Positions 1-64,000 of a stretch of 64,000 nucleotides of DNA are shown one piece after another. The stretch is taken from sequence record MH494197.1, one strand, 5' to 3'. The position numbers were made by a program, and so were the translations under genes. Numbering within the stretch: the first letter of the stretch is position 1; the number at the start of each line of letters is the position of its first letter. The notes beneath the pieces are model-generated. The model saw only the letters and a list, made by a program, of their open reading frames with translations. It was not told the DNA's origin and ran no database searches.

Positions 1-271
1 TGAGATAGTTTGCAAGTACTTTCTACAAATACTTTTAAAATAGTTTTCAGTACTCAATACTCATATAATAGATACACTTATGCACCCTGTGGGCTAGTGA
101 GCTATCTCTCAATGAATATATAATAGCAAAATGGCTGACCGAGTCAACCACTTTTTCATTTATTTTAGCTTTTAGAATCGCCGCCTTTCGCGTCATGCCT
201 TGCTTGATGTATTCTGTACTTTCGCTTTACGTGCATTCGCTTTATTTGCTTTCGTAAACGCCGAACAACTT

Positions 272-529
272 TTATAGTTTAAACCTGTTGGATTCATTTA
301 AATCACCATAAAGAATAGATAGGTTACTAACAACGCCGCGATCAATGCACCGACCGAACTGTAATAAGCTAATGATCTCATTTTTAGCCTGAAAATAATG
401 TTTAATTTGAGCGGCGGTCAGTGCACAATTACGCAGGAAGTTTTCTGTATAACTTTTGCGAGTACTGAAAGAGAATTGACCTTTGCTGCTGCCGATAGTA
501 ACATCAAACCGAGCGTTGTATTGTTTCAT
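272..529 (-). CDS. Hypothetical early protein (MKQYNARFDV..., ~85 aa)
   Basis: The ATG at 529 lies just downstream of cassette 549-610. The ORF-track start at 580 runs through the promoter hairpin. Confidence 0.7.
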   Translation of the reverse strand: MKQYNARFDVTIGSSKGQFSFSTRKSYTENFLRNCALTAAQIKHYFQAKNEIISLLQFGRCIDRGVVSNLSILYGDLNESNRFKL

Positions 530-1691
530 TTTGTTTCTCCTGTTATTGGGGAGAATCATTTCTCCCTTCATGTAAAACATTATACAGTACTAAAACTAAT
601 TGCAAGTACTATTTTTAGATTTACGCAAACTTTCTACCATCTCAGGAGTAAGGTCTGCGGGTAGGAAACTACTTCATCAACGAAACGTAAAGGAATACCC
701 CAGCGAAAGGTGAACGTGCTTTCTTAGTATTACTCTTTTTGATGCTTTCATTTCATATTCTTAATTAGTGGGGAGAATCATTTCTCCCTTCATGTAAAAC
801 ATTATACGCGTTTAAAACTAATTGCAAGTACTATTTGAAAGTAAATGCTCATACGCTACATTAACTACGTTTTCAATAACCGACTGTACAGAAAGATCCC
901 CACTTCCGGCTATAGTAGAAATCGCTTACAGTAGTGTCATCGTATGCAAATACTTTACCGTGACTGCATCAATCACATACATATTAACCTTTAAGATGTC
1001 GATCTTATCCTGTACAGTAAGCATATTAATTAACCTTTTAAGTACTGACTTAAGTAATCTTGTTGATCTTCGGTGATTGCAGCCATCTTCCCTAGTACTG
1101 GATTAATGATATAATCCCTGTAACGTCCTGTAACGCATTCTCAGGCGGTTTAACGGCTGGGGTAGCCATAGCCATTGCCGACTTGTTCGACGCTGTAACG
1201 CTCATAAAGGCGGCATTCTTCCGGTGTTAACATAGCATCAATGCGTTTCATTGGTTTAATGATGCTTTCGATCTCATTCAGTACTTGATTAACGTTCATG
1301 GTATAATCCCAATATAAGCGGCCTAAATCGACCGCTAACGATGTTTTGATTAATAGGTGTATGGTTGACGTTCAAACAATGATTGCACGTTGTACGCCCC
1401 GCTTATGGGCTTTGCTGGTAAATCAATTTTATATTGTTCACGCTTAAAGATAATAAAACGGCAATTGTTTTAACATCAAAATTGATTGAACGTTCCGAGT
1501 TTACCATCGTGCACAAATACAAGATAACCGCTCGCTACTTGTTTTGTAGTACTGGTTGCAACCATAGACCGCCGAACATGTGTACCTGCGTCGATTAAAG
1601 TACTGATATTTTTCATTTTACTATCCTCTTAAGTTGATTTAATTTCTTTCCCTATGCAGACACTGTACCAAAGTATCTGCATAAAGTAAAG

Positions 1692-2013
1692 CTAATTAAA
1701 GATCTTTTTACGTTTTACATCCTGTACAGTACAATGCAACGGGATAGACAAATCATTGCACAAACGATAGAGGGAGGTTTCATCAGTATTAAGCCCGTCT
1801 ACTGATTCCTTTAAGAGAGATAACGCCGTTTGTTGGTATGCATCTTCATAGCCATAAGTAAATGATTCAACCGCCAGATCATTCAAGCCGTTATCCAGTT
1901 CGACGCTTACATGACAAGAATGATGTATTGCCATATGAATCAGACCAACGTTTACCGTCAACATTGATTGCACGGATTGCAGCCGAAACGGTGTTAATGA
2001 TAGTTTTAGCCAT
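1692..2013 (-). CDS. Hypothetical early protein (MAKTIINT...KKIFN), one frameshift
   Basis: Promoter TTGACA-17-CATAAT at 2057-2085 and ATG at 2013; joins to ORF 1692-1973. Confidence 0.55.
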
Positions 2014-2338
2014 TTTAGTATTCCTTAAATTAATATGTGTCGTCTTGATAAAATCTATTATGCCAGTACTATCAAACTATGTCAATAGTACTGTGATAAT
2101 ATTTTTACTTACTTTTTGCTTTCTTTATTGCTTCCACCGGTCGGCCCATTCTTTACCCCATACTTGTAAATTATAATGGTACTGGCAAAGTGCAACGCCC
2201 CGCTTTAAACCAGTAATAGATTTTTACCACATTGACAAGTTTTCATTTTAGTTTCCTTGTAGTGGGAGAACCATTTTCCCCTTGATGTAATGTATTATAC
2301 TTTATTCGATTTACTTTGCAAGTACTTTTTAATTTAAT

Positions 2339-2551
2339 TCATCCGTAAAGGATACGCTCAACGCCCAAATCAGTTAAACTAATCGACGGCACTTGATAGG
2401 TTTCAATGTATGCTACACTTGCCCACTGACCGAACTCATTAACGGCCGTATTCATTGCATTTTGCAATTCCACACCTTCCTTGTTGGTAATGACTGCAAC
2501 TACTTGTTCGTTGCCAGTAGTACCAGATACGCGAGTAATGATAATAGCCAT
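2339..2551 (-). CDS. Hypothetical early protein (70 aa)
   Basis: Intact ORF directly behind promoter 2574-2612. Confidence 0.75.
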   Translation of the reverse strand: MAIIITRVSGTTGNEQVVAVITNKEGVELQNAMNTAVNEFGQWASVAYIETYQVPSISLTDLGVERILYG

Positions 2552-2987
2552 TTTTTAATTCCTATTCAGTAGTTGATGTATGTATTATGCCAGTACTTAA
2601 AACTATTGTCAAACTATTTTTAAAGTTTATCAATGATTGATGCCGTTTCATTGATAGTCTTGCCGTGTTTTGCACACGCGATAACTGCTTTAAATTCCTT
2701 TGATGACCAATCTTTCTTACTGCATACTGACATTACTTGTAAAGTAAAACAATCCAGTTCATAAGTATTCATCTTTATATCCTCAGTTAGTTAAGGTGTC
2801 TGCCTTGATGTAATTAATTATACGCTAATCTCTTAATCGTGCAAGTACTTTTATTACTTTTTGCAAAATACTTTAAACGCTCTCAATCGCATTACAACGA
2901 CCTTAACGCCACCAGCTAGGCAATGCATCAGATAATCAGTTTAAAGCGTTAGAATCGTTTCTAGGCGGTGCTGGTGGCGTAAACGAT

Positions 2988-3015
2988 AAAAAAAGCCCAC
3001 CGTTTAAGGTGGGCT
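2988..3015 (-). terminator. Rho-independent terminator
   Basis: Minus strand AGCCCACC-TTAAAC-GGTGGGCT followed by a T7 tract, just after the stop at 3028. Confidence 0.85.
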
Positions 3016-3027
3016 AGTGATTCAGTT

Positions 3028-3494
3028 TTATGCTTCAACTTTGCGATGAGCTTCGATCCATTCCTCGCGAGTCATACCACTGGAGTTAATCGCGTCCAGT
3101 ACTACCGCAATGCAGTTACCACGCACCGGAATCAGATATTCTTCCCGTTGTACTACCGCTACGCGTTCCTGAATCCATTTTTGGCTTTTACTTCTGGCTT
3201 GTCTTCCCATACTTAACCGCCGTGGCTTTTGTGCCATCTCTGTAACTACTTCCAGATCCAACTACTGCCGCCTGAATACTTTCGATTGTTGCTTGTAGTT
3301 CTGCTTCACGGGCCGCCTTTGCCGCTTCAATTTCTGCCGCTTTATTTGCTTGTAGTTCTTTCGCAGTACTGTAAGCGATGTTAAAATTATTGCGTACCGC
3401 TTTCATGGTATCGTTATCCAGTTCAGCCGGATCTCAGCCGCGACGTTAGTTTCATTTGCACCAGTGCTTTGATGAATGATTTTACATTAGCCAT
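3028..3494 (-). CDS. H-NS/StpA-like protein (~155 aa, frameshifted in this sequence)
   Basis: Re-joined frames give MANVKSFIKALGANETNVAAEIRAELDNDTMKAVRNNF...AREAELQATIESIQAA-LDLEVV...EEYLIPVRGNCIAVVLDAINSSGMTREEWI. By eye this aligns with the H-NS coiled-coil (KLQQYREMLIADGIDPNEL) and C-terminal domain ([32 protein letters not shown]). It has its own promoter (3604-3646) and terminator. Confidence 0.55.
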
Positions 3495-3979
3495 TTTATA
3501 AATCCTCAATTAAAGTTTAGTTTACGTTTATTAGTGTATCAAAGTTTTCTGACGTGTCCAGTTTTTCGTTCGACTTACTGGCGGTCTACTTAGTGCTCCC
3601 CGTCTTGATGTAATACATTCTACGCCTTTTTGCGGTAATGTCAACTACTTTCTTAAAACTATTTTCAAAGTATCTCAGTACTACGATACTACAAAACAAA
3701 AAGCCCACCCGTGGGCTGTATTAATCAGTAAGTAAAATATTAAACACTTTACCATTTAACGTTATTGGTGCACTGCTACCGTGCTCAAGATCCGTTAGTA
3801 TACCTGCAATCGCTTTATCATTGGCGACCTTTCCAGTGTCCAACAGTACGACAGTACTGATAAGATTAACGCTCGTTTCAATATCATAATGCACGGCGTT
3901 AAGGAGTTGTGTATACTGCTTTCGTTAAGTAAAACTATTCGTGCTGTCATGATGTACCCGTAGTATCTATCAACGGCAA

Positions 3980-4267
3980 TTAATAACGCCGGAATGCGTT
4001 ACTTTCAGTATCCATAACAGTGACCGAACCGCGTTTAGTACTTGCATCGTAATAAATTGTCGTGCTACCTTTTTCGTCTTCTTCATGGAACGGCCCGTTT
4101 TTAAATGCTTCTGGCTGGATCTCTAAATCCTTTAAAACAATCTCGCCAGTACTTTCATTGGTCATCGCTACAGTGCACTGAATGAATTTTTCACTACTTA
4201 CATCTAACGACGCATTAACAGCGAAAGAGGAAACAGATAAAGCCGTGGCGATGATTGCAATTTTCAT
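3980..4267 (-). CDS. Small secreted/periplasmic protein
   Basis: Signal peptide MKIAIIATALSVSSFAVNA; sits behind cassette 4286-4343. Confidence 0.75.
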   Translation of the reverse strand: MKIAIIATALSVSSFAVNASLDVSSEKFIQCTVAMTNESTGEIVLKDLEIQPEAFKNGPFHEEDEKGSTTIYYDASTKRGSVTVMDTESNAFRRY

Positions 4268-4677
4268 TTGATTATCCTTAGTTACGGGAACCGCTCTTGC
4301 GATGTAAAATATTATACAGTACTAAAAACTATTATCAAGTACTTTATGATTTTTATAAAACATTTCAGCAGTGATATTTTACCCGTTGGCTGTACTTTAT
4401 CCAGAATTTTTGATGTCCGGCCGTCCAAATGAATATGATCCGTAAACCGTAAACCAGTAGTTACCCTCAGTGTTTACATGTACAGCATAATAGGGAACGC
4501 CCGCGATTCATCACTAGTAAAGTGTGCTACCGTTCCGTTACATTCGCAGACGTTGATTTGATTTGTTCAAGCATTTTATTATTCCTTAGTTACCGTGGGA
4601 ACTGCTCCTATGCAAAACATTATACGCGTTTAAAACTAATTGCAAGTATTTTAATAAAAGTATTTGAAAAATAGTTG

Positions 4678-4706
4678 TTGACAAGTGCATCCAGTACTGG
4701 CATAAT
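4678..4706 (+). promoter_or_regulatory. Plus-strand sigma70 promoter with no downstream ORF
   Basis: TTGACA-17-CATAAT followed by TACTACATCAAG, the same start motif as the minus-strand cassettes. Confidence 0.75.
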
Positions 4707-5443
4707 TACTACATCAAGACGAAACAGTCACTAACCCACCGGGTGCATAGATCCGTCTATTAAATGATTCAGTACTGAAAAGTAACGGGAGTTATTATCT
4801 CCCCGTTGTTATTTTGTGGTATAAACAGAAGTCGCCTTTATTTGCTACGCCGCCAGTGTAACGCGAGGAATAGTCACCCGACTTCTGCTATTACCAGTGT
4901 ATCATCATTCAATTCGCGCAAACGGCTGGATCTTGTACGCCGATTTTGTCGGCATGTTCCCGCATAGATTTAACCAGTGCTTCCAGTTGGGAAAGAGTAG
5001 TGATATTAGCCATTGTATTTTCTCATTACCGTGGAGAACCATTTCTCCCTTTGATGTAAAACATTATACAGTACTGAAAACTAATTGCAAGTACTTTTTA
5101 ATATTGTTTGTCGTCGTCTTCCTCGATGAATTGACCGACGAAATGATCTACTTTCGCTTTGAGGCTTTTATAATCTTCTTCTACTTCCTTTAAACGTTCC
5201 GTAGTATTCCAGTGCCTCAACATATGCGGCCTCAGCCGTTTTCTCACGCATAGCTAAATTCATTCCACGCGTTTCATCAAATAGCCAAAACCATCGGTGC
5301 ATTCACTGATAGACAATGATTTGTTTAACACATTGTACTTTATTACTTTACTCATTAGATAACCTCAGTAAAGGCGGGAACTATTACCCGCCTCGATGTA
5401 AAGTATTATACGCTTTTAAACTTAGTTTGCAAGTACTTTTAAA

Positions 5444-6034
5444 TTAATATTCGATTGATTCTACTACGCCATCAATAACATTGAATTGATACTCGTTTCA
5501 ATCAGTGCCGTAATGTTTTCCAGTAGTGAATTGATCCTCATATGCATTCTCTAAATCACGGTACAACTTGCGGGACAATTCACGAATAGTGTCAGTGAGT
5601 AGTTCCTCAAGCTCATTAACTAACGTTTTTGTTTTGCGGTTAAATCCAGTGTAAGCCGATTCAATGTACCCGCTTACAGTATTCTTGAGTAGTGGGAGTG
5701 CGAACGCTTTACACTCATCGCCAAACCATCTTCATTCAGCAAGTGACGGATTGAGCGATTAGTTAATGCTTTACCTTGCGTAAAACTTCACTGCGTCAAC
5801 GTGGTCAGTACTGATTGATGCACCGTCCCCGGGACCAAAAGCCACTGAATCGTAAATCAGCGTCATTAATGCCATATTCCGGTAGTACTGTTTCAGTATT
5901 CATTTCACTTTCAGAAAAATAATCATCGTTTAAGTTTTTTCACGTTCCCGAACCAGTTCGATAGCTGACGTTTGTTGTTCTGCGTTCAATTCAGAAAAAT
6001 CCATAACGAAAGTAGTAGTAGTGATAGTTTTCAT
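5444..6034 (-). CDS. Hypothetical protein (~195 aa, contains FSGFWSRGDGAS), frameshifted
   Basis: Starts MKTITTTTFVMDFSELNAEQQ behind the promoter at ~6054-6090 and ends VVESIEY*. Not in the ORF track because of indels. Confidence 0.55.
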
Positions 6035-6241
6035 TTTGTAACCCTCATTCAGTAGTTGATGTAAGTATTATACGCTTTAAAAACGTCAAACTATTTTATC
6101 AGGGAGTTTTGTGCCTATTCCTCGGCTACTTAACGGAAGTTACTTATTTGTTCCCCGTCCTGATGTAAAACATTATACGCCTTTAAACATAGTTTGCAAG
6201 TACTTTTAAAAATAGTTTTCAGTACTGAATATTAAAAAGTA

Positions 6242-6401
6242 TTGACAGCATTATCAGTACTAATATAATTCCCATGACAACAGCTAACCCACGGTGCAAT
6301 TGTAACTGTAATAAACTTTTTCTAGATACACTTCCGCACCCTATGGGCTACGGCTTATCTGCCAATGAATACATTATGCCAGTACTGACAAAATAAGTCA
6401 A
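6242..6401. promoter_or_regulatory. Convergent promoter pair enclosing ~100 bp of non-coding DNA
   Basis: Plus TTGACA(6242)-16-TATAAT(6264); minus TTGACT(6401)-17-CATAAT(6373). Confidence 0.7.
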
Positions 6402-6750
6402 TACCGGCAATTGTAAAGATTTGTAAACTGCTTATACTGCAATCGCGTCCGTGCTATAATAATAATAAGTGCTATGGTGTGACTTACCTTTTATTTCAGT
6501 ACTGAATGAATCCGAACGATTTGCATATGATGTTAATTTAAAGTACTTTGATTTGTTGATACGTTACACCACAGATCCGCGTAAGTAGTTTTATTAGTGG
6601 TAGTATCTTTACGGTTTTAACTTCAGTCATATACATATTAGTCATTTTTATTACTCCGAGTTATAGGGGAACTATTCCCGCTCTCGATGTAAAACATTAT
6701 ACGCTTTTAAACTTAGTTTGCAAGTACTTTTATTCAAGTACTGCAATCTT

Positions 6751-6975
6751 TTAGTACGGTACACGGTCACGCGGTTGCTTTCGGTCGAGCTTTATTTCTA
6801 CCACTCGACGCGATACACTATCAGGACTTTTCAACGCCGCTAACCAGTACTGTAATGATCTGGCTGTACTACGCTTTACAATGGCCCAACGTTTACCACG
6901 TTCCGATTGTACGCCCATATCTTTAAACGTTGCCCGTCCGGCGTGCTGCGATCCGAGCTTGTTCACGCGTCGCAA
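6751..6975 (-). CDS. Small basic hypothetical protein
   Basis: Arg/Lys-rich ORF; the true start is probably slightly upstream (indel). Confidence 0.55.
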   Translation of the reverse strand: MRRVNKLGSQHAGRATFKDMGVQSERGKRWAIVKRSTARSLQYWLAALKSPDSVSRRVVEIKLDRKQPRDRVPY

Positions 6976-7829
6976 AATACTTAATATTCATGTTGTTCTT
7001 ATCGTTGGTGTATGAATAAACACTATTATAAAGTACTATCATCGTGCAATAGTACTTTAAATCTATTCTATTACATTCCAACCATTGCAGCACGGATCGA
7101 TAGTGCTATATTTGAATCCGTCCGGTGTTTTTCTTGTCCAGTCTGTTCTAAAAAATAACATCATATGACGGGCCGCATCATTGCGATTAGTGCTATCGTT
7201 AATAAAGTCCCAACTGGTATAATGATTCATCGTTATTAATCCAAAGGCTTACATTCCAATGAGTTTTGTTTTTGTGACCTAAGAACATTTTGATTTAGCC
7301 ATTTTTAATCTTATATAGTGGGGAACTATTTCACCCTGATGTAAAACATTATACGCTTTTAAACTTAGTTTGCAACTTTATTAAACTTATTTGTAATTTT
7401 GCACTGTCAGCCCATACTGTGAAACGATGCATATTATCCCATGCATCTTGTTTTAAATTTAAACTGTGCAATTCCTCAGTAGTTGCTATCCCCATTGGCT
7501 TACTACACACCGCGAAATTTTTCTCCATGTACTGATAAACCATCGTTAAATCATTTGAGATCATTACATGGATCATTGAATCAGCTATGAAGTAGCGTAT
7601 TGTTCACGCACGGCAACGGTTCCCGATAAGCTGTAAATGTGAATTTTACAGTTTCAGCCGGAAGACCTTTCATTTCACGGAAGTTAACCGTGTTAAGCAT
7701 GATTTTATTGATTTGAGTCGCCATCGTTTTAATCTCTTAATGTAGCGGGAAGTGTTCCTGCCTCGATGTAAAACATTATACGCTTTTATCAGTATGCAAG
7801 TACTTTCTACAAATACTTTTAAAATAGTT

Positions 7830-8700
7830 TTCTCTATATAGGGAACTATTATTCAGTACTGCAACCATCCGTGGGAACTATCTTTCTATAGTAGTACTAT
7901 TATTCAGTACTGAATCAATCCACCAAATCATCCTGATACCCGTAAAACGGCCTCAGACGCATTCTAACGCATTAATACACCTAAGCTATACATTTGCACC
8001 ATTCCAATCTTGGCTGGGCCGTTTAAACGCGTTAAATTATTTTCAATTATTTTGTTTTAGCTATTGACTCAGTACTAAAAAGCGTATAATTACACATAGA
8101 CGCGAGAAAGGAAACCAGAGGGTGCGGAATTACGCCCAAAATTCAAGATATAAAAAAAGGATACACCGCACCCTAGCAGGTTAACGCACTTTCTAGTACT
8201 GAAATATAGTAACATAGTCCGCTGATAGCAAGCAATTAAAACTTTTTCATCCGGTATTGCTTTATTTTTCCAGTACTGTATAATAGTTCCATCGTCGAGA
8301 AAGACTCAGCCCACCGTATAGTTACGCCCAAAATTCAGTACTGAAAATTTTAAAAATATCCGTCCGTGCGCGTTGTTCCCCCAGTTTATAAGATAATGAT
8401 TCCAGACTCCAGAACGGTTCATCCCACGCGGTAGGGGAACTATTGGAAAACAAAATAAAATTTTGATTTAGCCGTCTATACTTCCAGACGTGTAACCATC
8501 TAGCCGTTTAGCTGTCCAAACGTCAGCCATCCAGCCATCCAGAAATCTAGCCGTTTAGCCGTCCAGATGGATAGCCATTTCCAGACTTCTGAGGGCTAGA
8601 CATATCTACGTCCAAAATCCATCCGTGGTAACTACGCCCAAAATCCGTCAGTACTATACCATAGATCATCTTTGGAGTATTCAGTACTGCCATCAGCCCC
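7830..8700. repeat. Non-coding repeat cluster (candidate origin or terminal-repeat boundary)
   Basis: Four (T/C)TACG(C/T)CCAAAAT copies (8130, 8322, 8606, 8632), eight YAGCYRTY units at 8469-8580, GGGAACTAT repeats, plus-strand promoters at ~8064 and ~8257, and no ORF. Confidence 0.65.
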
Positions 8701-9816
8701 TCACATGTTACCCTAGGAGGATGAAGATCACCGCGGTACTGAATACTGTTAGAGGGAATCCACCAGCTTGGTGGTATAATCGTTTAGATTAAAATCAGTA
8801 CTGACACCATTCTGTTAATATCAGTACTGTTATTGATTTTCATATGAGGTTCAAAAAGATGTACCCACCACAGGAGGAACTATCTTTTCTGTACTGTCTC
8901 ACAGGAGGTAGAGTAAATGAATCGTTCGCAACTCATCTCTATGTAGAACATTATACAGTACTGAATCATAATGTCAATAGCTTTCTTTCATTATTCAGTA
9001 CTGATATTCTTGAGAACTACCCGACTACAAACATCATTATATCCCACAAATCATAAACGTCCCAACGTAAATTTCAACTTTCGAAGATCCAACTTTATTT
9101 CATAGGTACTCCAAAATTTTAGGATCGAGATTTAGGATGGAGTACTAACCAACTTTTGCTGAGCTCTGGATATTAAGGTGAAAGTAATAATTCAGTAATT
9201 AATCATTGGTGATTACTTTTGATTACATTTGATGTAATTTGCAAAATGGAAAAGGAGCTTGAAACTAGTACGGCAGACTTCCTCTGCCTACTAGGTGCTG
9301 GTTTCATCTATCGGAGGGAAATGGATTAACCTTAGCAATACGTAACTGAATACGTTCTTGATTAAACGTGCACATTCCTGTACTCTATTACACTCTAGTA
9401 CACTCTAGTACTCAATACTGATCACTACAATGATTATAAATGATTACTTAAATGTTTATATATGATTACTTATGACTACATATGATTAGGGTTTACTGGG
9501 AGAATCTAGTGATCGCATTTGTCCAGCTGAATTTTAACATATATAACATATGTTAAAGCCTGTCCAATGCTTCTGCGGAGCTTCTGTCTATATGTTGAAT
9601 TACTTCCTATATATAAGCATTAACATATAGTAGTACTGATTATGCTGTACATTCTCTTTAATATTATAAGGGTCTATAGCAATCTCGGTACATCTGTTAA
9701 ATGCATATCTATTAAATGCCAGTACTATTATAGATCTAATCCATGCTTGGTCAGTCGGTGGTAGTTTACTTATATAGTACTCTTTATAGTTTTTATGTTC
9801 TGCATAGTATACCTTA

Positions 9817-9996
9817 TTATTTCAAAGTACCATATAGTACTCTTAATAGGAAGTAGTACGTATTAGAGATATCATTACTAGTTAAAACAATCTTTGTACA
9901 CATATTAAATTCGTATTGAGTCATTGCTGGGATTAAATTGTTAACCCATGCTTGTTCGTTTTCTTTGAGTTTACTTATATAGAAGTCTTTATACAT
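9817..9996 (-). CDS. KEFY-family protein (MYKDFYISKLKENEQAW..., 59 aa)
   Basis: Hand-translated intact ORF, below the ORF-track length cutoff. Confidence 0.75.
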   Translation of the reverse strand: MYKDFYISKLKENEQAWVNNLIPAMTQYEFNMCTKIVLTSNDISNTYYFLLRVLYGTLK

Positions 9997-10228
9997 AGTA
10001 TTATCTCTATTAATATGATAGTACTAGTGTTAGTACTGAGCACAATTGTTCTTTATAGTTCTTAGGGTATATAGAATCTTTTATGCACTCATTGAAGTGC
10101 CATAGGTATAATCTTGGGTCGCATTCTTTATATATTTTACGCCATAGGTATATATCTTGGGTCGCATTCTTTATATATTTTTTACGGGGACGAATGTTAG
10201 TTTTCTTATATAGAAGTCTTTGTGTTCT

Positions 10229-10438
10229 TTATTCATATAGGAATAGTATACCTATGATGCCTGAGTACATGTTAGTACTGTTATTATTGGCGTTTGCGTT
10301 TAAAGTCATTTGAATACAATTGTTGTAGCATAATCTGCCGAAATATGTATCAGTACTTAAAGGTGCAGTAGTCCTTAGAAACATTTGTTCTGTGGGGCTG
10401 AGGTGTTTGGAGTAGAATTCTTTATGTTCATTATTCAT
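10229..10438 (-). CDS. KEFY-family protein
   Basis: MNNEHKEFYSKHL...YNNCIQ...YSGIIGILFLYE. Confidence 0.85.
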   Translation of the reverse strand: MNNEHKEFYSKHLSPTEQMFLRTTAPLSTDTYFGRLCYNNCIQMTLNANANNNSTNMYSGIIGILFLYE

Positions 10439-10634
10439 AGATATATAGGAGTGCCATTATGTTGGAGTATAGTTTATTGTTGTCATTTTCTTGCAGTGCT
10501 TGTATAGTACTACGTATACAGTTATTATAGCATATTTTTGTGAAATTATTTTGTAATTTCATTTTCATTGGTTTTGCTTTATAGAATGATTGTTTTGTGG
10601 GACTAAGATGATTTATGTAGAACTCTTTATACAT
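10431..10634 (-). CDS. KEFY-family protein
   Basis: MYKEFYINHL...YNNCIR...YSNIMALLYIYE. Confidence 0.85.
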   Translation of the reverse strand: MYKEFYINHLSPTKQSFYKAKPMKMKLQNNFTKICYNNCIRSTIQALQENDNNKLYSNIMALLYIYE

Positions 10635-10651
10635 GTTAGTACCTTAGTGCT

Positions 10652-10837
10652 TTAGTGTCTGTATATAAGTAATAGTAAGAATACGTACTGCACCTGTTCA
10701 TCTTTAGTATTGAGTACTGTACGTATTGCGTCATTAAACAAAAATATAGTACTTGGGTCATTAGAATTTAAGGGGTTTACGGGGACGGCGTGTTTGTAGT
10801 TCCCTTTAACAAATTGTATATAGTATTCTCTATGCAT
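10652..10837 (-). CDS. KEFY-family protein
   Basis: MHREYYIQF...FNDAIR...YVFLLLLIYRH. Confidence 0.8.
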   Translation of the reverse strand: MHREYYIQFVKGNYKHAVPVNPLNSNDPSTIFLFNDAIRTVLNTKDEQVQYVFLLLLIYRH

Positions 10838-10838
10838 A

Positions 10839-11027
10839 TCAGTACCTATATATTAGGGCGAGAATGTAGTACAGTTCATATGGAATGTAATTTGGGGTGA
10901 TAGCACACTGTGTATGGTAAATGAATTGTTGGGTATTTTTCTTATCCTTGATATCTATTGGGTTTAGTGGTATAAGCATTTGGGAGTTTAGTTCCAGATG
11001 GTTTAAGTAGAATTCTTTGTTATTCAT
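10839..11027 (-). CDS. KEFY-family protein
   Basis: MNNKEFYLNHL...YYILALIYRY. Confidence 0.8.
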   Translation of the reverse strand: MNNKEFYLNHLELNSQMLIPLNPIDIKDKKNTQQFIYHTQCAITPNYIPYELYYILALIYRY

Positions 11028-11226
11028 AGAAGAATATTAGTCCCATTACGCCTGAGTACTGAATATTTTTGTTATTGTTTTCTAAAGCTTCTAGAGTAAT
11101 ACGTATACAATTATTAAAGCAATCTCTGGCGTGTGGTGTATCTAAACGTAAAGGTGATACACTCCTTAGAAACATTTGTTCTGATGCACTGAGGTGTTTG
11201 GTGTAGAATTCTTTCTGTTCGTTCAT
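11020..11226 (-). CDS. KEFY-family protein (close paralog of 10229-10438)
   Basis: MNEQKEFYTKHLSASEQMFLR...FNNCIR...YSGVMGLIFFYE. Confidence 0.85.
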   Translation of the reverse strand: MNEQKEFYTKHLSASEQMFLRSVSPLRLDTPHARDCFNNCIRITLEALENNNKNIQYSGVMGLIFFYE

Positions 11227-11236
11227 ATTGGCCTCT

Positions 11237-11981: not shown

Positions 11982-12080
11982 AGTTTGAAATATACGTAAT
12001 GAGGTGATGAAATTTCTTATCAGTACTGATAAGTTCCTGTACATGTTTTGTTAGTTTGTACGCGTTTTATAGAGTCCGGA

Positions 12081-14181: not shown

Positions 14182-14182
14182 A

Positions 14183-52367: not shown

Positions 52368-54179
52368 AATTAAAATCCCAGTATTTGATGAAATAATTAT
52401 AACAAAAAGGCTGACCGAAGTCAACCTTTATTTTGAAGTTCTTGAACTAATTGTCGTACTTCTTTGATGTTACGACACTGCTTTACAGTGAAGTAATCAT
52501 ACTTACGACCATAGGTTCTTGGATCATCACCTTCCATATACTGCTGCACATCAAAGATTTGTAAGTAGGGATGCTGCATAACACGAATGTTACCACATTG
52601 ATAAATCAACATATGTTTAGTCCTCATATTTACACAAGCCACCGAATGTTGCCTGTTTTGCTGCCTTACGCATCATCACAAGTTTAACATACTGTTCGCC
52701 ATTACTATCTTCATATACATCAACTTGAAGAAATGCAAGCATATTGGGATCAGTATCGTTCGAGTACTGCGTAAAACTAATGTCACCTACGGTATGTTCT
52801 TTAACAAAATTATACACTTCACCGTCGATATAAACGATAGTATGGTCATCGCTATCACCTTGGTAAATGTGTTTAATATCACCTTCAGTACAGACTAGTC
52901 CGTAATGGTTCTGCATAAGACATACCACATATAATCATACAAACAAAAACAAAATTACTTTCATGATTTGTTTCCTTTGGATAAAATGGATTTCTTCACT
53001 TTGTACTGCTTGTAGTTATTATACCAAACATCGGTTACATAAATCAAGTACCAAAGTGATGGATATAATGATAGACCAATAAAACTGAAAAATACTTGTA
53101 TTAATAAAACCAATACAGTGCAGTGTAAATGCAACGATTAGAATACCAATCGTAATCATACTAGCTGAATATGGTACACTATCAGATGCGAACCATGAAT
53201 CAACCTTACTAATTAAAGTATACTTTCCAGTACTGACAGCATAAACAATTGCTGCTATACCAAATAATGCCATTGAAATAGTTATTACTGAGTTAATAAG
53301 AATCGGAGTAATTAATACATAAAGCATTACATCGTTTATCATTTGTTATACCTTACAGTTCACAATGAATATTCAATTTATCAATGTCCTGATCGCGTTT
53401 ATTCGACGAATCTTGATAAATGACTATGTAAATATCCCCATCCTTTGTCTTGGGGTCCACTATCAATATTACATTTGCTATTATACCAGCATCTGATTTA
53501 TATGTCGATACCTTTTTATTCCCAATCAAACTCTCGGCCTGAAACGGTAAACCTCATCATCTACGACAATATTGTTTCCATTTTGTGGGTCATTAGAAAG
53601 TACATGCCATGTTCCATCGTTTCCCATACAATCAAGGTAAGCAGGTACGGCTGTACTGAACCTTGAATAAAGCATGAATACTACAAACACCATTATCATT
53701 CTTATATATTTTTTCATTATAACCTCTAACGAGCAATACTTCTGCACATATTATTTGTACAGAAGTATTTAATACTATTAGAGACTTTTGAACGTTACTT
53801 CTTACTAGTTAGTTTATCTTTCAAGATATCAACCCAAATGGAAACTTTACCAGCAAACAATGCATTAGTAAACCATACAATACCAACAATGTTCTCAACT
53901 AAATTCATAATTGAAACAAATGGTCCAATTGGTAATACAAAACTTACTAACCATGACAGTACTGAAATAAGTACTACAACGAAGAAGATTCGTGCAATGG
54001 GTGAGTCTAACATAAACAACTCACGAAACTCATCACGCTCGGTTTCGTCTTTAATGAAGAATTCGAAAACCATAACCCATAACAGAATTAGAGCAGGAAT
54101 TGAAATTAGAACTGATAACATGTTTTATATCCTCAAGTTTAAGTGTTAAGTTTCAGACTACAAGAACCATTATACAGTA

Positions 54180-54422
54180 CTACAAACGTTTGTCAACAGG
54201 TTTTTCTTCAATAAGCATAAGATAACTGAAGACGAATAGTAATACAGATGCCATGTCAATAACCGTAAAGTTCACGGGAATGATAATAGACACTAGAACG
54301 AGTGCCACGTTTAGCAAGAATACCGTAGTGATATCCACCAGCTTTCGTTTAGTGGCTACTGCTACTAGTGTAGGGTAGAACATAAACAATAATGCGACTA
54401 CAAAACTCAATACTAGATACAT
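54180..54422 (-). CDS. Imm-like membrane protein
   Basis: FYPTLVAVATKRKLVDITTVFLLN. Confidence 0.55.
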   Translation of the reverse strand: MYLVLSFVVALLFMFYPTLVAVATKRKLVDITTVFLLNVALVLVSIIIPVNFTVIDMASVLLFVFSYLMLIEEKPVDKRL

Positions 54423-54804
54423 TTCTTTTCACCTTAAGAAAATTATAACATAAAACAACCTCAACATCTGGCTCATCATACAAGTACTCAAAGCGTTCTT
54501 TACTACGCTTAGTACCGATGTACTCACCATTCTTATGCCAACGCCACCCACCACTCTCTGGTTGGTCAGACTTCAGTACTGGATGATAGCACAAGACAAT
54601 TTCTTCTGGACCTTCAATAAGGTTCTTGTACTTCGTCAAAATCTGTTCAAGCGTATCTGCTACACCATAAGATGGGTGCATAAGATAAGACTCAGGGCGT
54701 GCACGACCACTTGGTAGAATGTCATCAGTACTATTAAAGATAGCACGGAAGTCTTCTGACGTGTATAAACTTCCATCTTCATGGATCATGGGATACTCAT
54801 CCAC
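54349..54804 (-). CDS. Hypothetical protein (GGWRWHKNGEYIG motif)
   Basis: Long ORF on the operon strand. Confidence 0.7.
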   Translation of the reverse strand: MDEYPMIHEDGSLYTSEDFRAIFNSTDDILPSGRARPESYLMHPSYGVADTLEQILTKYKNLIEGPEEIVLCYHPVLKSDQPESGGWRWHKNGEYIGTKRSKERFEYLYDEPDVEVVLCYNFLKVKRNVSSIEFCSRIIVYVLPYTSSSSH

Positions 54805-56825
54805 TACATCATAATCAGTGAAGTGTTCAATCGCATGTCCGGTCTGTAACCTGCGAGGATACCTGTATGTTTCGTCTGTACAATAGTCATAACAGATGTA
54901 CTATTGTTTACATTAGGATCATGAATTTCAGCCCAAAAGGATGATGAGGATCAAATGTAGCATTAACTAAAGTACAATCACCAATGTAGTCGAAATTAGT
55001 TTCTTTAAAGTTTAAAGAAACACCACGCAATGCCCAATCAGGAGAAGTGATGAAATTAAGATTAACTAACATAGTATCCTCAGTTGCGGTTGTTTTGATA
55101 CAGTTATTATATCAAAGACGTGTCAATTTGTACAACATTTATTGTAACTATTTCGTACATAAAATCAATTGCATTGAACTCTGCATACCACTCTACAATC
55201 TCACAAGCAGCATCAACTTGGTTTTCGCATTAACACGTCTGGCATAGGTGCTGCTCATTTTGAATCTACCATATTCATAGACATTGTAGACACCATGACA
55301 CCACCACATTTTAGTCATTAATGCTAGGCCATACAGTGAATTGTAAGTTCTGGTATTCGAATTTACCAATATCATTCTTCTTACGGAATGATTCTTCAAC
55401 CTGAATTTCTGCGTCGTACTGACCATCGGCCTTTACTACGTACTTAAAATTTTCTACATGTGAAAAACGATACCCGTCTCCGTCTTGCTTGGATACTTGA
55501 ACTGACCCTTCAACTAGATATAAATTCATTTGTCATTCTCCATCATATTCAGTGAGTATTACACTATGTACTGTTTCAACATAGCGTTGTGTTTTGGTGT
55601 GTTGTACTTAGTTACTTCATCAAACAATTTAAATAGTGCATGTGTTGGACTTAATGCACGAACAAACACATCAATCTTCTGTACTTCTTTCTTATAGCCA
55701 CGTACATTATTAAACTCAGACACATGCTCATAAACAATGTAGTAACGATTCATATATTAAGTAGTTCCATAAATTCATCGATCAAGGAAGTTCTAATGCA
55801 CATAACAAATTCAAAATCAACATCGATAGTATCGAGTAGTTTGAACAACTTTGGTACATTTGGGTCATTCAACTGGAAGTTATGAATCAAGCTCTGTTGA
55901 AACACACTTTCTTCAGTACTGTAATCAATAACAAAATATTCAGCTACACGGTGGTGAATAAACATCATATAATATCTGACGTTTATTGTGTGTTTCTGAA
56001 CCGACAATATATAAGTTCTATTTCATACGAACCTGCCGAGGATCTATCATAAAACACAATTTCAGTACTGATTATTTCACTACCATCACTTCGTTCATGA
56101 AAACATACATCGGCATATCGTTTACCATTGGGCTTCAAAATCTCATGAGTTGTTTTACCATAACATTTATCAGTTTCAATGTGAATTTTGTCTTGATATT
56201 CAGAACGTCTTACATCATTTCCACGATTAAACAATAAGATCAACAACTCATTAATATCCATTATTTCGCCTCGATAACCTTAAGGTTAACAAAATCACCT
56301 TTTACTTTCATGCATTTGAATTCAGTGCGAGTTTCATCCCCACTATCGCGAGGCCAATGAGTAGCAGAGTAGCACTGGTCAGGCGTTTTATATACACCTT
56401 CACCAATAGTACGAGTGATCTCACCATTGGTGAGAACTACTGCGAGATATAAAGTAAGCATGGGAATTCCTATAAAATTTATTAATAATAATAGCACCCA
56501 AACCAAGTACTGCAATAATTGAAGATACCCACATTACCGCATTCACTGCACCAGTAAGTTCTTTATCAAACTCCTGCACTTCTTGCGGTAATCTTCCCAC
56601 TCTTTGTTATTCACACTGCCACTCCTAATAGGTCGGTAGCTTTCTTCAGTACTACGTCAATTGTTTCCAGTACTGCACCTTTGTGTTCAATTGATACAAT
56701 ATTATTATAAGTATCAAGGTCCAAGTACTCCATGTATTCAGTTTTGAATACACGAACATCAGTACTAGTGATTTTAATATCACAACCTTTATCCCAAATA
56801 ACCTGCATCATTTCATTGGTAGTCA

Positions 56826-57083
56826 TTATTCAACCTTATCATAAACAAGTTTGTGTGTGCTTAGTACTTTGTTGAGATGTCGGGCATTCATATACATACA
56901 ATCGCTCTGACGTTTTTCCCAACCACCACAGATACGACCTGATTGTGTACATATTTCATACTCGTTAATAAAAGACTTACCTGTGAATGTACAATCCTGA
57001 CGAACTAAGTCTTTTGCACTAAACCTGCCGTCATCATTACATGCTGTAAGAAACATTGTACAGAATACAAAGACCACAGTCAA
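56826..57083 (-). CDS. Putative lipoprotein
   Basis: Hydrophobic N-terminus with lipobox FLTAC. Confidence 0.6.
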   Translation of the reverse strand: MTVVFVFCTMFLTACNDDGRFSAKDLVRQDCTFTGKSFINEYEICTQSGRICGGWEKRQSDCMYMNARHLNKVLSTHKLVYDKVE

Positions 57084-57706: not shown

Positions 57707-58886
57707 TAACGAACCTCCACTTCTTGAGAAAGAGCATGAGTCAGTGCATTTGAATTCGAACCATTCATTTCACGCTGACATACAAACATAATGGCATCTT
57801 GTACTGAACCTGCGATTTCATACTCACGACCTTCTGGATCAGTTACCAGATGTTCAACGATACAACCACCTCTCAGTACAGAAGCACCAGTACTTACACT
57901 AATTCTGTAACCTAAGAAATCAAACTGCATACATGCGTCAGTAGGTTTCATCCAATAACCGCTGTTTTGATTCAAATCGATGATTACAAAACCTTGAGTG
58001 TTAGTTTGAAACATAGTTAATTCCTCATTTAATTTAAAGGGCGGGAACGCAGTGACGAGTACGATTATGCTGTCTTTCCTTTCACTGCATTCCCTTTGAT
58101 ATAAACATTATACAGTACTGATATCTTATGTCAAGTATTAATCACCAAAAATCATCAGATACCCAAACCAACCCACACAGATGACTAAGCTAACAATACC
58201 AAAGATAATCTCTAAAGTCATGTTACATCCTTAATCAATGATTTTATATTCACGATGACCATAGAATCCAGCCTCAAGGATGCGATTACCGTCAGCATCT
58301 TCTAAATCCCACCCACGGGATGTTTCGGCAATAATAGTCATGATGTGACCTCTTGGGAAAATTCCACTCAAGGTGGATACATCCTCAAGTAATTGAACCT
58401 TCTTACCAACATTCGAATTTGATTTAAACATACTTTACCCTTATTCGTTGATTACGTCAAGTACTTTGTCCAGTTTCTTACCAATACTATCCTTTGGTTT
58501 ATCACTATTCTGGAATACATTAGTACTGCAATACTCAGGACGGGTATTAGGAAACTTCTCGTTCATCCGAGTGACCATATACACCAAGAATGATACCTAC
58601 GATAAGAATGATGATTTGCATGATATATCCTCTAATTAAATTACATACGGTTTATAGTAATGAATCTCGTTTGCGATTGCAGTGAAAACTTTATTATTAA
58701 ATCTTTCACCATAATCACGAAGTGATTCACCTTCTTCGCTTTCAATGAAGTAATTATATACTGGTAGACGTGCGGTGTCAACACCTATAAATGATTTCAT
58801 GTAAATTTGTACTAAACGATTCATTCCTTCATTTAAGCATTGCACCTCAAAGTGCTTGATACCTTTGTCTAAGTGTTTGAATGCAT

Positions 58887-61480: not shown

Positions 61481-62416
61481 TTACTTCTCCTAATGAATGA
61501 AATCAAAAACGGTATACATTAATATTATCATCGGTATAGATATCATGGTTATGAACATCCATGAAGGTATCAAATACCTTATCAAGAAGAGTATTATACT
61601 CTTCATGTACTGCTATCAAGCATGTATTCACCACCACTACCCATAAAGAATGTATAATCATTATGGAGATAATCAATCTTCTTGGTAAACTTACCCTTAT
61701 TAACGATTAAGTGAATGATGTAATCTTTTGACACAAGAACACAGTGACAACTCGCCTTGCGGTCTGGTATCACAGTCTCTTGTGAAATCAAGTATCTCAG
61801 TACTTTGTTAATTTCACTAACCTCACCGCAAGCACTAAACAGTCGGTCGTGTACATACAATGTTTTTGTGAAACTACACCATAACTAAGTTTTGGTTTCA
61901 ACGGGAATAGGTTCAAAATGAACGTTGCTCAGTTGATGTCACTTTTGAATCAGTAAGTAATACTCCCAAGCGTTTATCAATATAAACAGTCGTCATATTA
62001 AACCTTATCTAAAATTTATCATAGATATAATATTCTTTATCGTTGAATACATTAATTCCGGATCGAAGCGTTGAAGTGTATTCATGTATAATGAACTTTT
62101 AAATAAAAATACAATGCAACAAATTCAGATATATGCATATTCTTTTTATTATTACATAAATTCTTTAGCATTTTAATGCTATCAAAATCATCTTTATCAT
62201 ATCTGTACTGGTAAAATTATATCTATTGAACTGACACTCATAGATACGAAGTGCCATTATGTCAATACATGCTTTAGATTTACAGTACTTATTCAATACG
62301 TCATAATCACCCACACATAATGCTACAAAGATTTTATGCAAGCGTAGCTTTACCTTCAATAGTATAATAACCAAAGAACTTACTGATTAAGTAATGTATA
62401 AATCTAAGCATTGGAT

Positions 62417-62674
62417 TTAGAATTTCTCCGAAATTACCAGTGTATCATCATAGTCATCAGCAACCGTATTCAGTACTTCCAAATTACTTTCACCAGAAAT
62501 ACTTTGTACTTCGTTCAAAAGATAGTTTAGATCAACTTTAGTTACTTTTTCTGAATCAAACACACAGAAAGTCAATTCAGCGTTTGGACAGATCTTCTTC
62601 AGATTATCAGCAACAACTTGTTTGAAGTTAAAAGATGGGAAGCAACGGTTAACTGCAACGAGAATAGATTTCAT
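62417..62674 (-). CDS. Hypothetical protein (85 aa)
   Basis: Intact ORF on the operon strand. Confidence 0.7.
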   Translation of the reverse strand: MKSILVAVNRCFPSFNFKQVVADNLKKICPNAELTFCVFDSEKVTKVDLNYLLNEVQSISGESNLEVLNTVADDYDDTLVISEKF

Positions 62675-62748
62675 AATGTTTTCCTTTTTAGCTGATAATT
62701 AAATTAGGAGCACATTGTACTCCATGTTATTGGTTAAGTCAAATACTT

Positions 62749-63000
62749 TTAGATACCGAGTGCCGAATTTAATTCTTTACGCTTATTGTATGAATCAGAT
62801 TCAATCTTACTTTTCTTGTTGAAAAGGGATTCGATATCCTTATAGATTGCTTCGATAGATTTAGTTACTACCCATTCGGATTCCTGAAGCATAGCTTGAA
62901 GACGTGCGTACTCAACTTTGATAGTACTGCGAAGTTCTTCACAAGCTTCTTCGTTCTTAATTAGTGCTTCACTAAGTTCTTTGACCTTATCGATGTTCAT
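62749..63000 (-). CDS. Coiled-coil hypothetical protein (83 aa)
   Basis: Heptad-like E/K/L pattern; behind promoter TTGACG-17-TATAAT at 63035-63063. Confidence 0.7.
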   Translation of the reverse strand: MNIDKVKELSEALIKNEEACEELRSTIKVEYARLQAMLQESEWVVTKSIEAIYKDIESLFNKKSKIESDSYNKRKELNSALGI

Positions 63001-64000
63001 AAGTTCCTTACCATTTCCCAGTTTTGATGTAATAATTATATATCTCTCAATAACTCACGTCAACTGTTTTCCGTACCTTTCTCTGCCATTTTTGTGATGT
63101 GCCATTTGAGTACTGATTTGTGTACCATAAAAATGTGAATGCAAAGACTGTAATGGCTGCTGAAGTAACACTATTAGATAAAGACCAAGTTGGATGTTAG
63201 TACCTAAAATAACAATAAATGGATATAACACAATCAATCTACTGTAAGGTTCGTCTCCAGTATCACGGATAAATCCAAGCCTTTCATGATCAGTATCCAT
63301 AGTGACAATTGGACAGAACATAAGTGCAGACATAACAGCAATACCAATTTGTGCTACATTGGCAATTGTAAACCACAAAGGATTTAAACCATATGAAATG
63401 TTGTTTTCAGTACAGTAATACCCAAATGTATTGATTGCACAAACTAAAAATACAAAAATACAAATCTTATTGTATCCCTCATTTGTTTAGCTCCGTTAAT
63501 TTTCGTTTAACTTCAAGATCATAATACTCATCAGCATATGAGTTTTGAACAGTTCTTGTATATTCCAACATAACAAACATAGAACCACACACCCACAGAT
63601 AAGTATAGTAATCAAATACAAAAGCATAGATAATACATGGTATTAAAATAAATGTAAACACAAAACTATATCTCTTAGTACCGAATACTTTAACAAAAAG
63701 CAGACGGCGGCAATCACGTGCAAATGTATGAATACATATAGAAAATATAATCAATGAATACCATGAAATGCCCGGATTACACCTGAAACATTTACAAGTT
63801 TATGTCCGTCTGAAACCCCAGTGCATTAAGCACTGGAGCCATAACCCAATAATAGCAATAAGAAATAGATACTTTGCATTGCTAAGTGTGAACATTATTT
63901 CAGTCCCCATGCCTTTTAATAGCATCCACTGCGTTCTGGTCTACGACTTCCTGTTTAGTAGCACTGGTTTGTAGTTTATCAATTACATAGTTCTTAGCAT

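Follow-up and report, generated by a model that had tools for sequence, protein, structure and literature searches.

Gene content of the window and its source genome

The 64,000-nucleotide (nt) stretch of sequence record MH494197.1 analysed here (positions 1 to 64,000; hereafter, the window) matches Escherichia phage CMSTMSU (MH494197.1, 386 kb) at 99.9-100% identity. CMSTMSU is a Rak2-like jumbo myovirus of the genus Asteriusvirus and is kin to phages 121Q, PBECO4 and WPEC5. The G+C content of the window is 35.8%. Its first ~9 kb, together with the homologous 26 kb of WPEC5, contain many small genes, each with a sigma-70-type promoter. Recognisable proteins encoded in the window comprise DenV, a sigma-70-family factor, 16 fragments of RCC1-like proteins, and nucleases of the HNH and homing-endonuclease-gene (HEG) types. 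Here we analyse the palindromic hexamer AGTACT, which recurs throughout this DNA. The word is strongly enriched independently of coding, has symmetric flanks, is conserved with balanced turnover, is restricted to one clade of phages, is far denser in phage than in host DNA, and occupies fixed positions in early promoters.

Abundance of AGTACT

AGTACT occurs 239 times in the window (3.7 per kb), ~11x the number expected from base composition (21.7), a first-order Markov model (22.8) or dinucleotide-preserving shuffles (22.2, standard deviation 4.2; z score ~52). None of the 100 shuffles came as high as the observed count, the shuffle maximum being 33. AGTACT is the commonest hexamer of the window, the next unrelated word reaching 97 copies, and GTAC is the most over-represented tetramer (606 copies, 2.9x). 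An earlier note, written from the letters of this DNA, had described the word as highly iterated across the window, and these counts bear it out; its hand counts, 16 copies in 1-3000 and 12 in 54001-57000, are exact. Tetranucleotide usage, which the same note had named as a possible source of the excess, does not account for it: the order-3 Markov (tetranucleotide-based) expectation, hand-computed from k-mer counts, is ~94, and the observed number is still 2.5x higher. The maximal-order Markov expectation is 199; this model nearly absorbs the signal, but only because AGTACT itself raises the counts of the 5-mers AGTAC and GTACT.

Every 2-kb bin of the window is enriched, and two regions differ in density:

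1-16000, no strand: dense block, 103 AGTACT, 6.4 per kb; numerous small early genes, chiefly on the - strand, with one sigma-70-type promoter apiece
16001-64000, no strand: rest of the window, 136 AGTACT, 2.8 per kb; same density within and outside open reading frames (ORFs)

The spacing of the copies is slightly more even than random in all eight segments (coefficient of variation 0.72-0.97 vs 0.98; sign test, p ~0.004).

Lytic phages avoid short palindromes. For the other palindromes of the window this expectation, stated for 6-bp palindromes in the earlier note, holds true, with 19 of the 64 palindromic hexamers missing, including CTGCAG, GGATCC, CCATGG, GGTACC and GCATGC; AGTACT is the opposite. 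CAGCTG and CGTACG are present in one copy each, and GGTACC and CGTACG are avoided despite sharing the GTAC core with AGTACT. The E. coli Chi octamer GCTGGTGG is enriched too, with eight copies in the window (2909, 2970, 8760, 14935, 28360, 28618, 43851 and 54335) vs 0.59 in shuffles. WPEC5 has 18 Chi sites in 50 kb and, among the positions listed, 9 of 10 lie on the early-gene strand within the first 21 kb (1361-21066); the early block of 121Q has 10 per 50 kb, mostly on the gene strand. If the early end of WPEC5 and 121Q is the physical genome end, Chi sites there would face RecBCD entering from that end.

Independence from coding usage and repeats

Window ORFs contain 138 AGTACT copies, compared with 43.2 (standard deviation 5.4, maximum 55) after synonymous-codon shuffling and 20.6 after codon permutation, which keeps codon usage. 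The word had been claimed to occur in all reading frames, and each of the three is indeed enriched, 2.7-3.9x above the synonymous control; frame 0 (Ser-Thr) carries most copies. Because the CMSTMSU ORFs look fragmented, the shuffles were repeated on long ORFs of relatives and controls:

121Q long ORFs: AGTACT observed 71, synonymous shuffle 26, codon permutation 16
RaK2 long ORFs: AGTACT observed 104, synonymous shuffle 31, codon permutation 18
GAP32 long ORFs: AGTACT observed 82, synonymous shuffle 20, codon permutation 14
CBB long ORFs: AGTACT observed 45, synonymous shuffle 10, codon permutation 8
T4 long ORFs (control): AGTACT observed 3, synonymous shuffle 4.6, codon permutation 5.2
E. 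coli long ORFs (control): AGTACT observed 2, synonymous shuffle 4.7, codon permutation 5.3

Enrichment of all frames, in synonymous codon choice as well as in amino acids, is found in the window and in core genes of 121Q, RaK2, GAP32 and CBB.

As regards the fragmentation itself, ATG-started ORFs of at least 49 amino acids cover 64.5% of the window vs 79-95% in most relatives; the coverage in one 30-kb sample of CBB, 65%, is similar to that of the window. Split genes include the sigma-70 gene (~61.5-62.7 kb) and a homing-endonuclease-like gene (~39.3-41.3 kb). The source record is flagged UNVERIFIED_ORG, so that many of the frameshifts in the window are probably sequencing errors.

Repeats contribute little to the count. 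Non-repeated DNA (56 kb left after masking of self-similar DNA) retains 192 AGTACT copies vs 19 expected, and when the sites were clustered by their flanks, 195 of the 207 clusters were singletons. The largest repeat-borne subset and the tightest groups of copies are:

15836-33464, + strand: ten copies with related flanks (15836, 22970, 24209, 25429, 26636, 27899, 28694, 29876, 31080, 33459), ~1.2 kb apart, in the RCC1-like paralogue array
15178-15212, + strand: three AGTACT within 35 nt, inside ORF 14980-15645
50921-50948, no strand: three AGTACT, two of them abutting (AGTACTAGTACT)

The RCC1-like (beta-propeller) tandem array extends over ~15000-33000 (+ strand) with 16 Pfam WD40_RLD matches, and its paralogues are separated by hairpin terminators based on CAGTACTG and GTACTGG.

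Thus, an artefact of composition, codon or dipeptide usage is excluded by the Markov models and by the dinucleotide, synonymous and codon-permutation shuffles, and confinement to repeated cassettes by the copies in unique DNA. These were the two trivial origins that the earlier note had allowed for; the coding excess is kept under its codon-shuffled control.

Codon usage in these phages is itself peculiar. AGT is the commonest Ser codon of 121Q core genes (289 of 877), beside ACT as the commonest Thr codon, and 121Q encodes a tRNA-Ser with the anticodon ACT (121Q locus 25464-25555), which reads AGT by Watson-Crick pairing. This unusual tRNA-Ser(ACT) may compensate for the load of AGT-ACT codons. 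The odd codon use and the tRNA are better seen as consequences of AGTACT maintenance than as its cause.

Anatomy of the word and its flanks

The half-site consensus in the window is t-T-y-C-AGT. The base preceding AGTACT is C in 45% of the sites and G, the rarest, in 9% (pyrimidine 73%, purine 27%), and the following base mirrors it; this preference for C and against G recurs in RaK2, GAP32 and CBB. Neither side depends statistically on the other, with ~50 copies of CAGTACTG expected from the marginals and 52 observed; TTCAGTACTGAA occurs six times. When sites are oriented by the sense strand of the ORF, C is found at -1 in 64 and the complement of +1 is C in 63 (p=0.33). Such symmetric flanks are the mark of a two-fold symmetric duplex-DNA reader rather than of a signal in RNA. 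An RNA-level signal was rejected on this sense-strand symmetry together with the copies upstream of transcription starts. Around dispersed copies in core regions, no fixed-distance partner motif (a directional promoter-like element) was found.

Perfect palindromes of at least 8 bp are formed at 35% of the sites vs 27% by chance. They include a 14-bp palindrome that had already been spotted near 7902 and is confirmed at that place:

12016-12033, no strand: 18-bp perfect palindrome CTTATCAGTACTGATAAG, the longest centred on AGTACT
7902-7915, no strand: 14-bp perfect palindrome ATTCAGTACTGAAT; RNA fold of -1.4 kcal/mol, no gain over shuffled sequence

One-mismatch neighbours of AGTACT are present in the window at 1.1-2.6x, the sole low one being AGGACT/AGTCCT (0.41x). 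Outer variants (NGTACT) stand at 1.9-2.6x and inner variants at 0.4-1.9x, a weak contrast. AGTATT/AATACT is at 1.3x, and biased repair of the very-short-patch type was rejected, there being no such depletion among the one-mismatch neighbours.

Distribution among phages and in the host

AGTACT was counted in samples of related and unrelated phages and of the host; for PA5oct, Atu_ph07, most 121Q blocks and the metagenomic loci, this was done by word search alone.

WPEC5: 238 AGTACT in 50 kb, 14x
121Q, seven blocks: ~870 AGTACT in 329 kb (2.6 per kb); 4.6x in the replication block, 226 per 50 kb in the early block
RaK2 (Alcyoneusvirus): 114 AGTACT in 50 kb, 6.9x
GAP32 (Mimasvirus): 96 and 105 AGTACT in 40 kb and 35 kb, 7.2x (40-kb sample)
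CBB (Mimasvirus): 77 AGTACT in 30 kb, 7.5x
Metagenomic contig, 73% terminase identity: 36 AGTACT in 21.6 kb, enriched
PA5oct (Pseudomonas): 1 AGTACT in 40 kb, 10.9 expected
Atu_ph07 (Agrobacterium): 2 AGTACT in 30 kb, 3.6 expected
Nine metagenomic relatives, 43-45% terminase identity: 0.1-0.5 AGTACT per kb in 6-21 kb each, not enriched
T4: 3 AGTACT in 30 kb, 5.4 expected
E. coli K-12: 3 AGTACT in 50 kb, 4.9 expected

The enriched phages (5-14x in the named ones) include relatives from Klebsiella, Cronobacter and Pectobacterium, in which AGTACT is likewise the commonest hexamer, at ~10x chance. The word is enriched in Asteriusvirus, Alcyoneusvirus and Mimasvirus and not in PA5oct, Atu_ph07, the nine relatives with 43-45% terminase identity, T4 or E. 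coli, and the enrichment is thus a trait of one enterobacterial jumbo-phage clade. In this sample, AGTACT is ~60x denser in phage than in host DNA. The single copy in the PA5oct segment (100001-140000), against the expectation given above, amounts to active avoidance in a sister lineage.

Conservation and turnover

Between the window and 121Q (86% identity), 71% of AGTACT sites are intact vs 50% of all hexamers, and identity is 0.915 in the AGTACT core and 0.862 in the flanks. The aligned part contains 96 window sites and 91 sites of 121Q, with 72 in common, 24 found only in the window and 19 only in 121Q; gain and loss are therefore balanced. Across genera, 47 orthologous genes of 121Q and RaK2 were compared (65% amino-acid and 69% nucleotide identity). 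In these genes, 22 AGTACT sites occupy the identical codon and frame in both phages; retention is thus 39% when counted from 121Q and 26% when counted from RaK2, compared with a background of 16% for all hexamers. Among 34 conserved Ser-Thr dipeptides, 16 are encoded by AGT-ACT in both phages, where independent codon choice predicts ~1. Taken together, conservation, turnover, neighbours and spacing indicate that density is selected for, with positions conserved in part.

Early promoters and terminators

Promoters in the early block of WPEC5 were defined as matches to TTGNNN-N16-18-TATAAT (42 in all), and AGTACT was sought within 50 nt upstream of the -10 hexamer. It is present in 36 of the 42, at two preferred places. 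In 19 promoters the word begins at -27 (counted from the -10 hexamer), where it follows an A-tract and covers the first T of a TTGCAA -35 box; in 19 others it starts at -7 or -8, giving the designs AGTACT-G-TATAAT or AGTACT-GG-CATAAT, usually with the consensus TTGACA. In window 1-9100, 16 of 20 promoter-like sites show the same AGTACT positions. The density of the word in the WPEC5 early block is 10.1 per kb in non-coding vs 3.3 per kb in coding DNA, with metagene peaks 30-60 nt ahead of start codons and 0-30 nt past stop codons. Promoters hold only ~10% of all AGTACT copies.

Copies in promoter spacers, abutting -35 boxes and forming terminator arms had all been described before the present analysis, and each is confirmed at individual sites:

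579-610, - strand: two-copy early promoter; -10 TATAAT 579-584; AGTACT 586-591 one base upstream of the -10; AGTACT 605-610 overlapping the first T of -35 TTGCAA
5063-5095, - strand: two-copy early promoter of the same type; -10 5063-5068; AGTACT 5070-5075 and 5090-5095
4311-4343, - strand: two-copy early promoter of the same type; AGTACT 4318-4323 and 4338-4343
2057-2092, - strand: promoter TTGACA-N17-CATAAT; AGTACT 2065-2070 (spacer, two bases from the -10) and 2087-2092 (just upstream of the -35)
4678-4706, + strand: promoter TTGACA-N17-CATAAT; AGTACT 4693-4698 in the spacer
43356-43383, - strand: promoter TTGACA-N9-AGTACT-G-TATAAT outside the early block; AGTACT 43363-43368; same design at 54169-54196 and 58107-58134
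17025-17044, + strand: terminator hairpin, stem of two AGTACT (17028, 17036), then a U-run; -13.4 kcal/mol, z -4.0
35329-35355, no strand: hairpin between convergent ORFs, stem AATCCAGTACT / AGTACTGGATT (AGTACT 35334, 35345), flanked by T/A runs; -15.1 kcal/mol, z -5.7

By eye, resemblances of AGTACTG-TATAAT to a LexA box, a TrpR operator or an extended -10 do not hold, as spacing or letters misfit. The window also carries repeated terminator-promoter fusion cassettes aaaGGGTTGACttcgGTCAGCCCttttgcTATAAT (-10 hexamers at 38655, 41339, 45790, 48819 and 52396, - strand), in which the GC-rich hairpin stem contains the -35 TTGAC and the T-run leads directly into TATAAT.

Search for a reader or modifier

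Two methyltransferases are listed in ~329 kb of 121Q annotation. One, gp417, belongs to the Dam family (PF05869), with generic phage Dam relatives and no solved relative; the other, gp91, is a short C5 enzyme that is nearest to the catalytic domains of DNMT3, HaeIII and HhaI. Neither points to AGTACT, and their specificities are not readable from sequence. The earlier note had advised looking for a co-occurring methyltransferase or DNA-binding gene: the former search yielded these two enzymes, and the latter no reader recognisable in the window or in the 121Q annotation. No Vsr-like gene is annotated in the same ~329 kb.

RaK2 DNA is reported to carry CpG methylation, with resistance patterns consistent with methylation of the Dam/Dcm/CpG type (PMC3622015); AGTACT contains no CpG. 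Ten restriction enzymes cut the DNA of the related phage fEgEco12 as predicted (PMC13070987), and this DNA is therefore free of bulk hypermodification. The papers on related phages that were checked make no mention of ScaI or RsaI digestion.

Several candidates were rejected. The 121Q 'endonuclease' gp221 and RaK2 ORF115 are not restriction enzymes but CapR-domain, homing-endonuclease-like proteins. A lower AGTACT density in homing-endonuclease genes would have indicated slow amelioration, but the result was mixed and uninformative. The host nucleoid-occlusion factor SlmA has the site consensus GTGAGTACTCAC, in which G1, T2, A4 and G5 are required along with a purine at position 3 (PMC3020112); a role of the phage sites as SlmA decoy was discarded given that the window holds 0 matches to GTRAGYRCTYAC and that the flanks are opposite to what SlmA needs, a purine preceding AGTACT in only 27%.

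Interpretation and alternative explanations

AGTACT is a clade-specific word that selection at the DNA level maintains at a high, fairly even density. We tentatively propose that it is read on duplex DNA by a putative lineage-specific, symmetric phage factor, acting as an operator in early promoters and as a dense tag elsewhere; we regard this as a serious possibility rather than as probable. A two-fold symmetric reader encoded by the enterobacterial Rak2-like phages would bind AGTACT (half-site yCAGT). Bound over the -35 hexamer or over the spacer beside the -10, it would exclude RNA polymerase, and AGTACT at early sigma-70 promoters would then be an operator that shuts off early genes. We infer this repressor role of the putative reader because both fixed promoter positions overlap RNA polymerase contacts, along with a role in distributed binding or marking: the dispersed copies, from ~870 in 121Q to an extrapolated 1400 in CMSTMSU, would serve as scattered places for binding or nucleation and so set phage DNA apart from that of the host, be it for compaction, protection or recruitment. 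As AGTACT is self-complementary, tandem copies have in addition been recruited as terminator stems. A bolder version, which we consider rather unlikely, is that AGTACT is a sequence-encoded identity tag, with a phage protein that reads the ~60-fold density contrast and also switches off early promoters.

The earlier note had proposed a genome-wide mark for a phage methylase or modifier, a nucleoid or packaging protein, or a recombination signal. Its general claim holds up: the word is a mark at the DNA level, not a product of composition, as seen from its occurrence in all frames and in non-coding DNA, its retention through synonymous codon choice across long divergence, the symmetry and the clade specificity; the candidates put forward for it have been only partly sorted. 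A Chi- or uptake-type recombination signal is unlikely, since neither the word nor its flanks have an orientation. A methylase stays a candidate; the two methyltransferases of 121Q, however, belong to the Dam and short C5 families, and there is no repair-driven depletion of neighbours. A nucleoid-type or regulatory binding protein fits best, none having been identified.

Several observations weigh against the operator-and-tag reading. No reader is recognisable among the window proteins or in ~329 kb of 121Q annotation. Two proteins considered for this part are too narrowly distributed: RaK2 ORF149 is a true Mom (Pfam E=4e-37), which would suggest Mom-type adenine modification, but it occurs in RaK2-like records only and is missing from Asteriusvirus (the RaK2 mom gene lies at 35505-36089 between frd and dda, where 121Q has an RNase H-like gene), and the HTH_19 protein GAP32_488, which adjoins the sigma factor, is found only in Mimasvirus. 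The reduction of the substitution rate at the AGTACT core is only moderate, ~40%. Many early promoters are paralogous cassettes, so that their fixed AGTACT positions are not independent events, and AGTACT is missing from two annotated GAP32 promoters. Inside genes, a tightly bound roadblock would impede transcription; the operator and the dispersed roles therefore need different affinities or contexts, which is an assumption. Finally, the host AGTACT density rests on a single 50-kb sample of E. coli.

Among the alternatives, an orphan methyltransferase that modifies AGTACT or GTAC, with the word kept by methylation-dependent biased repair or as a needed methyl mark, would make the phenomenon akin to the cyanobacterial highly iterated palindrome HIP1; we deem this improbable, if well worth considering. 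RaK2 DNA is reported to be methylated (PMC3622015), but the methylation shown includes CpG, gp91 resembles short CpG-type C5 enzymes, and AGTACT has no CpG. Like type II sites such as that of ScaI, the word is a 6-bp palindrome; it matches HIP1 in frequency, frame-independence and clade specificity, and orphan methyltransferases do occur in these phages (121Q gp417 of Dam family PF05869 and gp91 of the C5 type), gp417 being however a generic phage Dam family member without a solved relative. The outer variants NGTACT (1.9-2.6x) are more enriched than most inner variants, and Elhai reportedly observed the same outer-position bias in HIP1 variants; a cognate orphan methyltransferase for the HIP word or its core is likewise said to be present in the same genome (Elhai, in 2015). 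Yet no one-mismatch neighbour is depleted as by very-short-patch-type repair (AGTATT/AATACT 1.3x), no Vsr-like gene is annotated in ~329 kb of 121Q, and repair bias leaves the fixed promoter positions unexplained. The latter are equally unexplained if AGTACT is the preferred site of a phage DNA enzyme (a T4-type topoisomerase II, or a nicking or priming enzyme) needed at intervals of a few hundred bases so that a genome of 350-390 kb can be decatenated, replicated in a recombination-dependent manner or transcribed late in infection. Such an enzyme would account for the even spacing and the dispersed, genome-wide density, and topoisomerase II, primase-helicase and recombination genes are present; the symmetric word is centred on a 4-bp core, and a 4-base stagger, A^GTAC^T, would fit topoisomerase II geometry, a fit that is inferred only. 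With PA5oct and Atu_ph07 encoding homologous replication modules and yet lacking enriched AGTACT, we consider this explanation quite doubtful.

Two further explanations seem still more remote. That the phages exploit or titrate the site of a host enterobacterial protein, such as SlmA, would agree with the limitation of the enrichment to phages of Enterobacterales and with the SlmA consensus GTGAGTACTCAC, which has AGTACT at its centre (PMC3020112). The window, however, has 0 matches to GTRAGYRCTYAC, the preceding base is a pyrimidine in 73% of the sites with G the rarest, and T4, which has the same host, is not enriched; we accordingly regard this origin as very improbable. Least credible of all is a by-product of coding or RNA, whether it stems from the use of codons or dipeptides (Ser-Thr, Val-Leu, x-Tyr-x), from the tRNAs of the phage or from a signal for RNA processing. 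It has in its favour that Ser and Thr are most often encoded by AGT and ACT, that 121Q has tRNA-Ser(ACT), and that frame 0 is the richest. But the excess survives synonymous and codon-permutation shuffles in all frames, the non-coding density is equal or higher, copies lie upstream of transcription starts, and the flanks are symmetric on the sense strand; as the sole cause, such a by-product is already refuted.

Relation to known systems and significance

The closest known phenomenon is cyanobacterial HIP1, and the comparison with it, already drawn in the earlier note, is apt. HIP1 (GCGATCGC) and the alternative cyanobacterial palindromes are, like AGTACT, short palindromes present about once or more per kb, far above expectation; AGTACT, at 3.7 per kb in the window and 2.6 per kb in 121Q, reaches at least ~1 per kb in many-fold excess. 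Both HIP1 and AGTACT occur in coding (all frames) and non-coding DNA, and both are clade-specific and maintained with turnover; the phage word is not repeat-borne, is shared across its clade and is absent from the sampled relatives outside it. AGTACT differs from HIP1 in being viral and in being a mixed A/T-G/C 6-mer vs a GC-rich 8-mer, in its stereotyped use in promoters and terminators, and in that no cognate methyltransferase has been identified.

DNA uptake sequences (DUS of Neisseria and USS of Pasteurellaceae) are likewise genome-wide self-marking words that are often paired as terminator stems, and AGTACT shows such inverted-repeat pairing in the two-copy hairpins at 17025-17044 and 35329-35355. 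Unlike AGTACT, which is palindromic and belongs to a phage without an uptake step, they are asymmetric 9-12-mers read by the competence machinery. Chi (GCTGGTGG) and the FtsK-orienting polar sequences (KOPS) likewise are short, occur frequently, tag DNA as self and tune a DNA-processing machine, but they are asymmetric and strand-oriented, and AGTACT and its flanks have no orientation. The binding sites of SlmA (SBS) and Noc (NBS) are scattered palindromic sites bound by a dimeric helix-turn-helix protein, and those of SlmA share the AGTACT centre; SlmA, however, has ~50 sites per 4.6 Mb vs ~2.6-3.7 AGTACT per kb, and the phage flanks contradict its requirements. Phage repressor operators resemble AGTACT as palindromes at a fixed place, overlapping the -35 or the spacer beside the -10, here in dozens of early promoters; in contrast to such operators, only ~10% of AGTACT copies lie in promoters, and no repressor was recognised in the window or in the 121Q annotation. 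The hydroxymethylcytosine of T4, with Alc and the host-DNA nucleases, is a functional analogy only, as the AGTACT mark would be a sequence word.

We found no description of the AGTACT excess in the literature on jumbo phages, on over-representation of words in phages, on bacteriophage highly iterated palindromes or on ScaI/RsaI with these phages, and the word is not described in the CBB, Sharanji, fEgEco12 and RaK2 genome papers or in a phage restriction-avoidance survey, all searched for related terms.

A clade comprising the largest coliphages thus has a palindrome as its commonest word and bends both protein sequence and synonymous codons to keep it. That one palindrome is so favoured and kept implies a strong, unrecognised function at more than 800 sites per genome. 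The word is a simple signature for spotting the clade in metagenomes. Restriction systems of the ScaI type (AGTACT) or specific for GTAC are predicted to be either devastating to these phages or specifically countered. The reader, once found, would add a principle of phage genome organisation or self-recognition, could explain the early-gene shut-off in Rak2-like phages and would make these phages a tractable model for the long-unsolved HIP1 problem. If the identity-tag version is true, the word would do in a jumbo phage without hypermodified bases or a nucleus what hydroxymethylcytosine does for T4, and would direct transcription, protection or host-DNA destruction.

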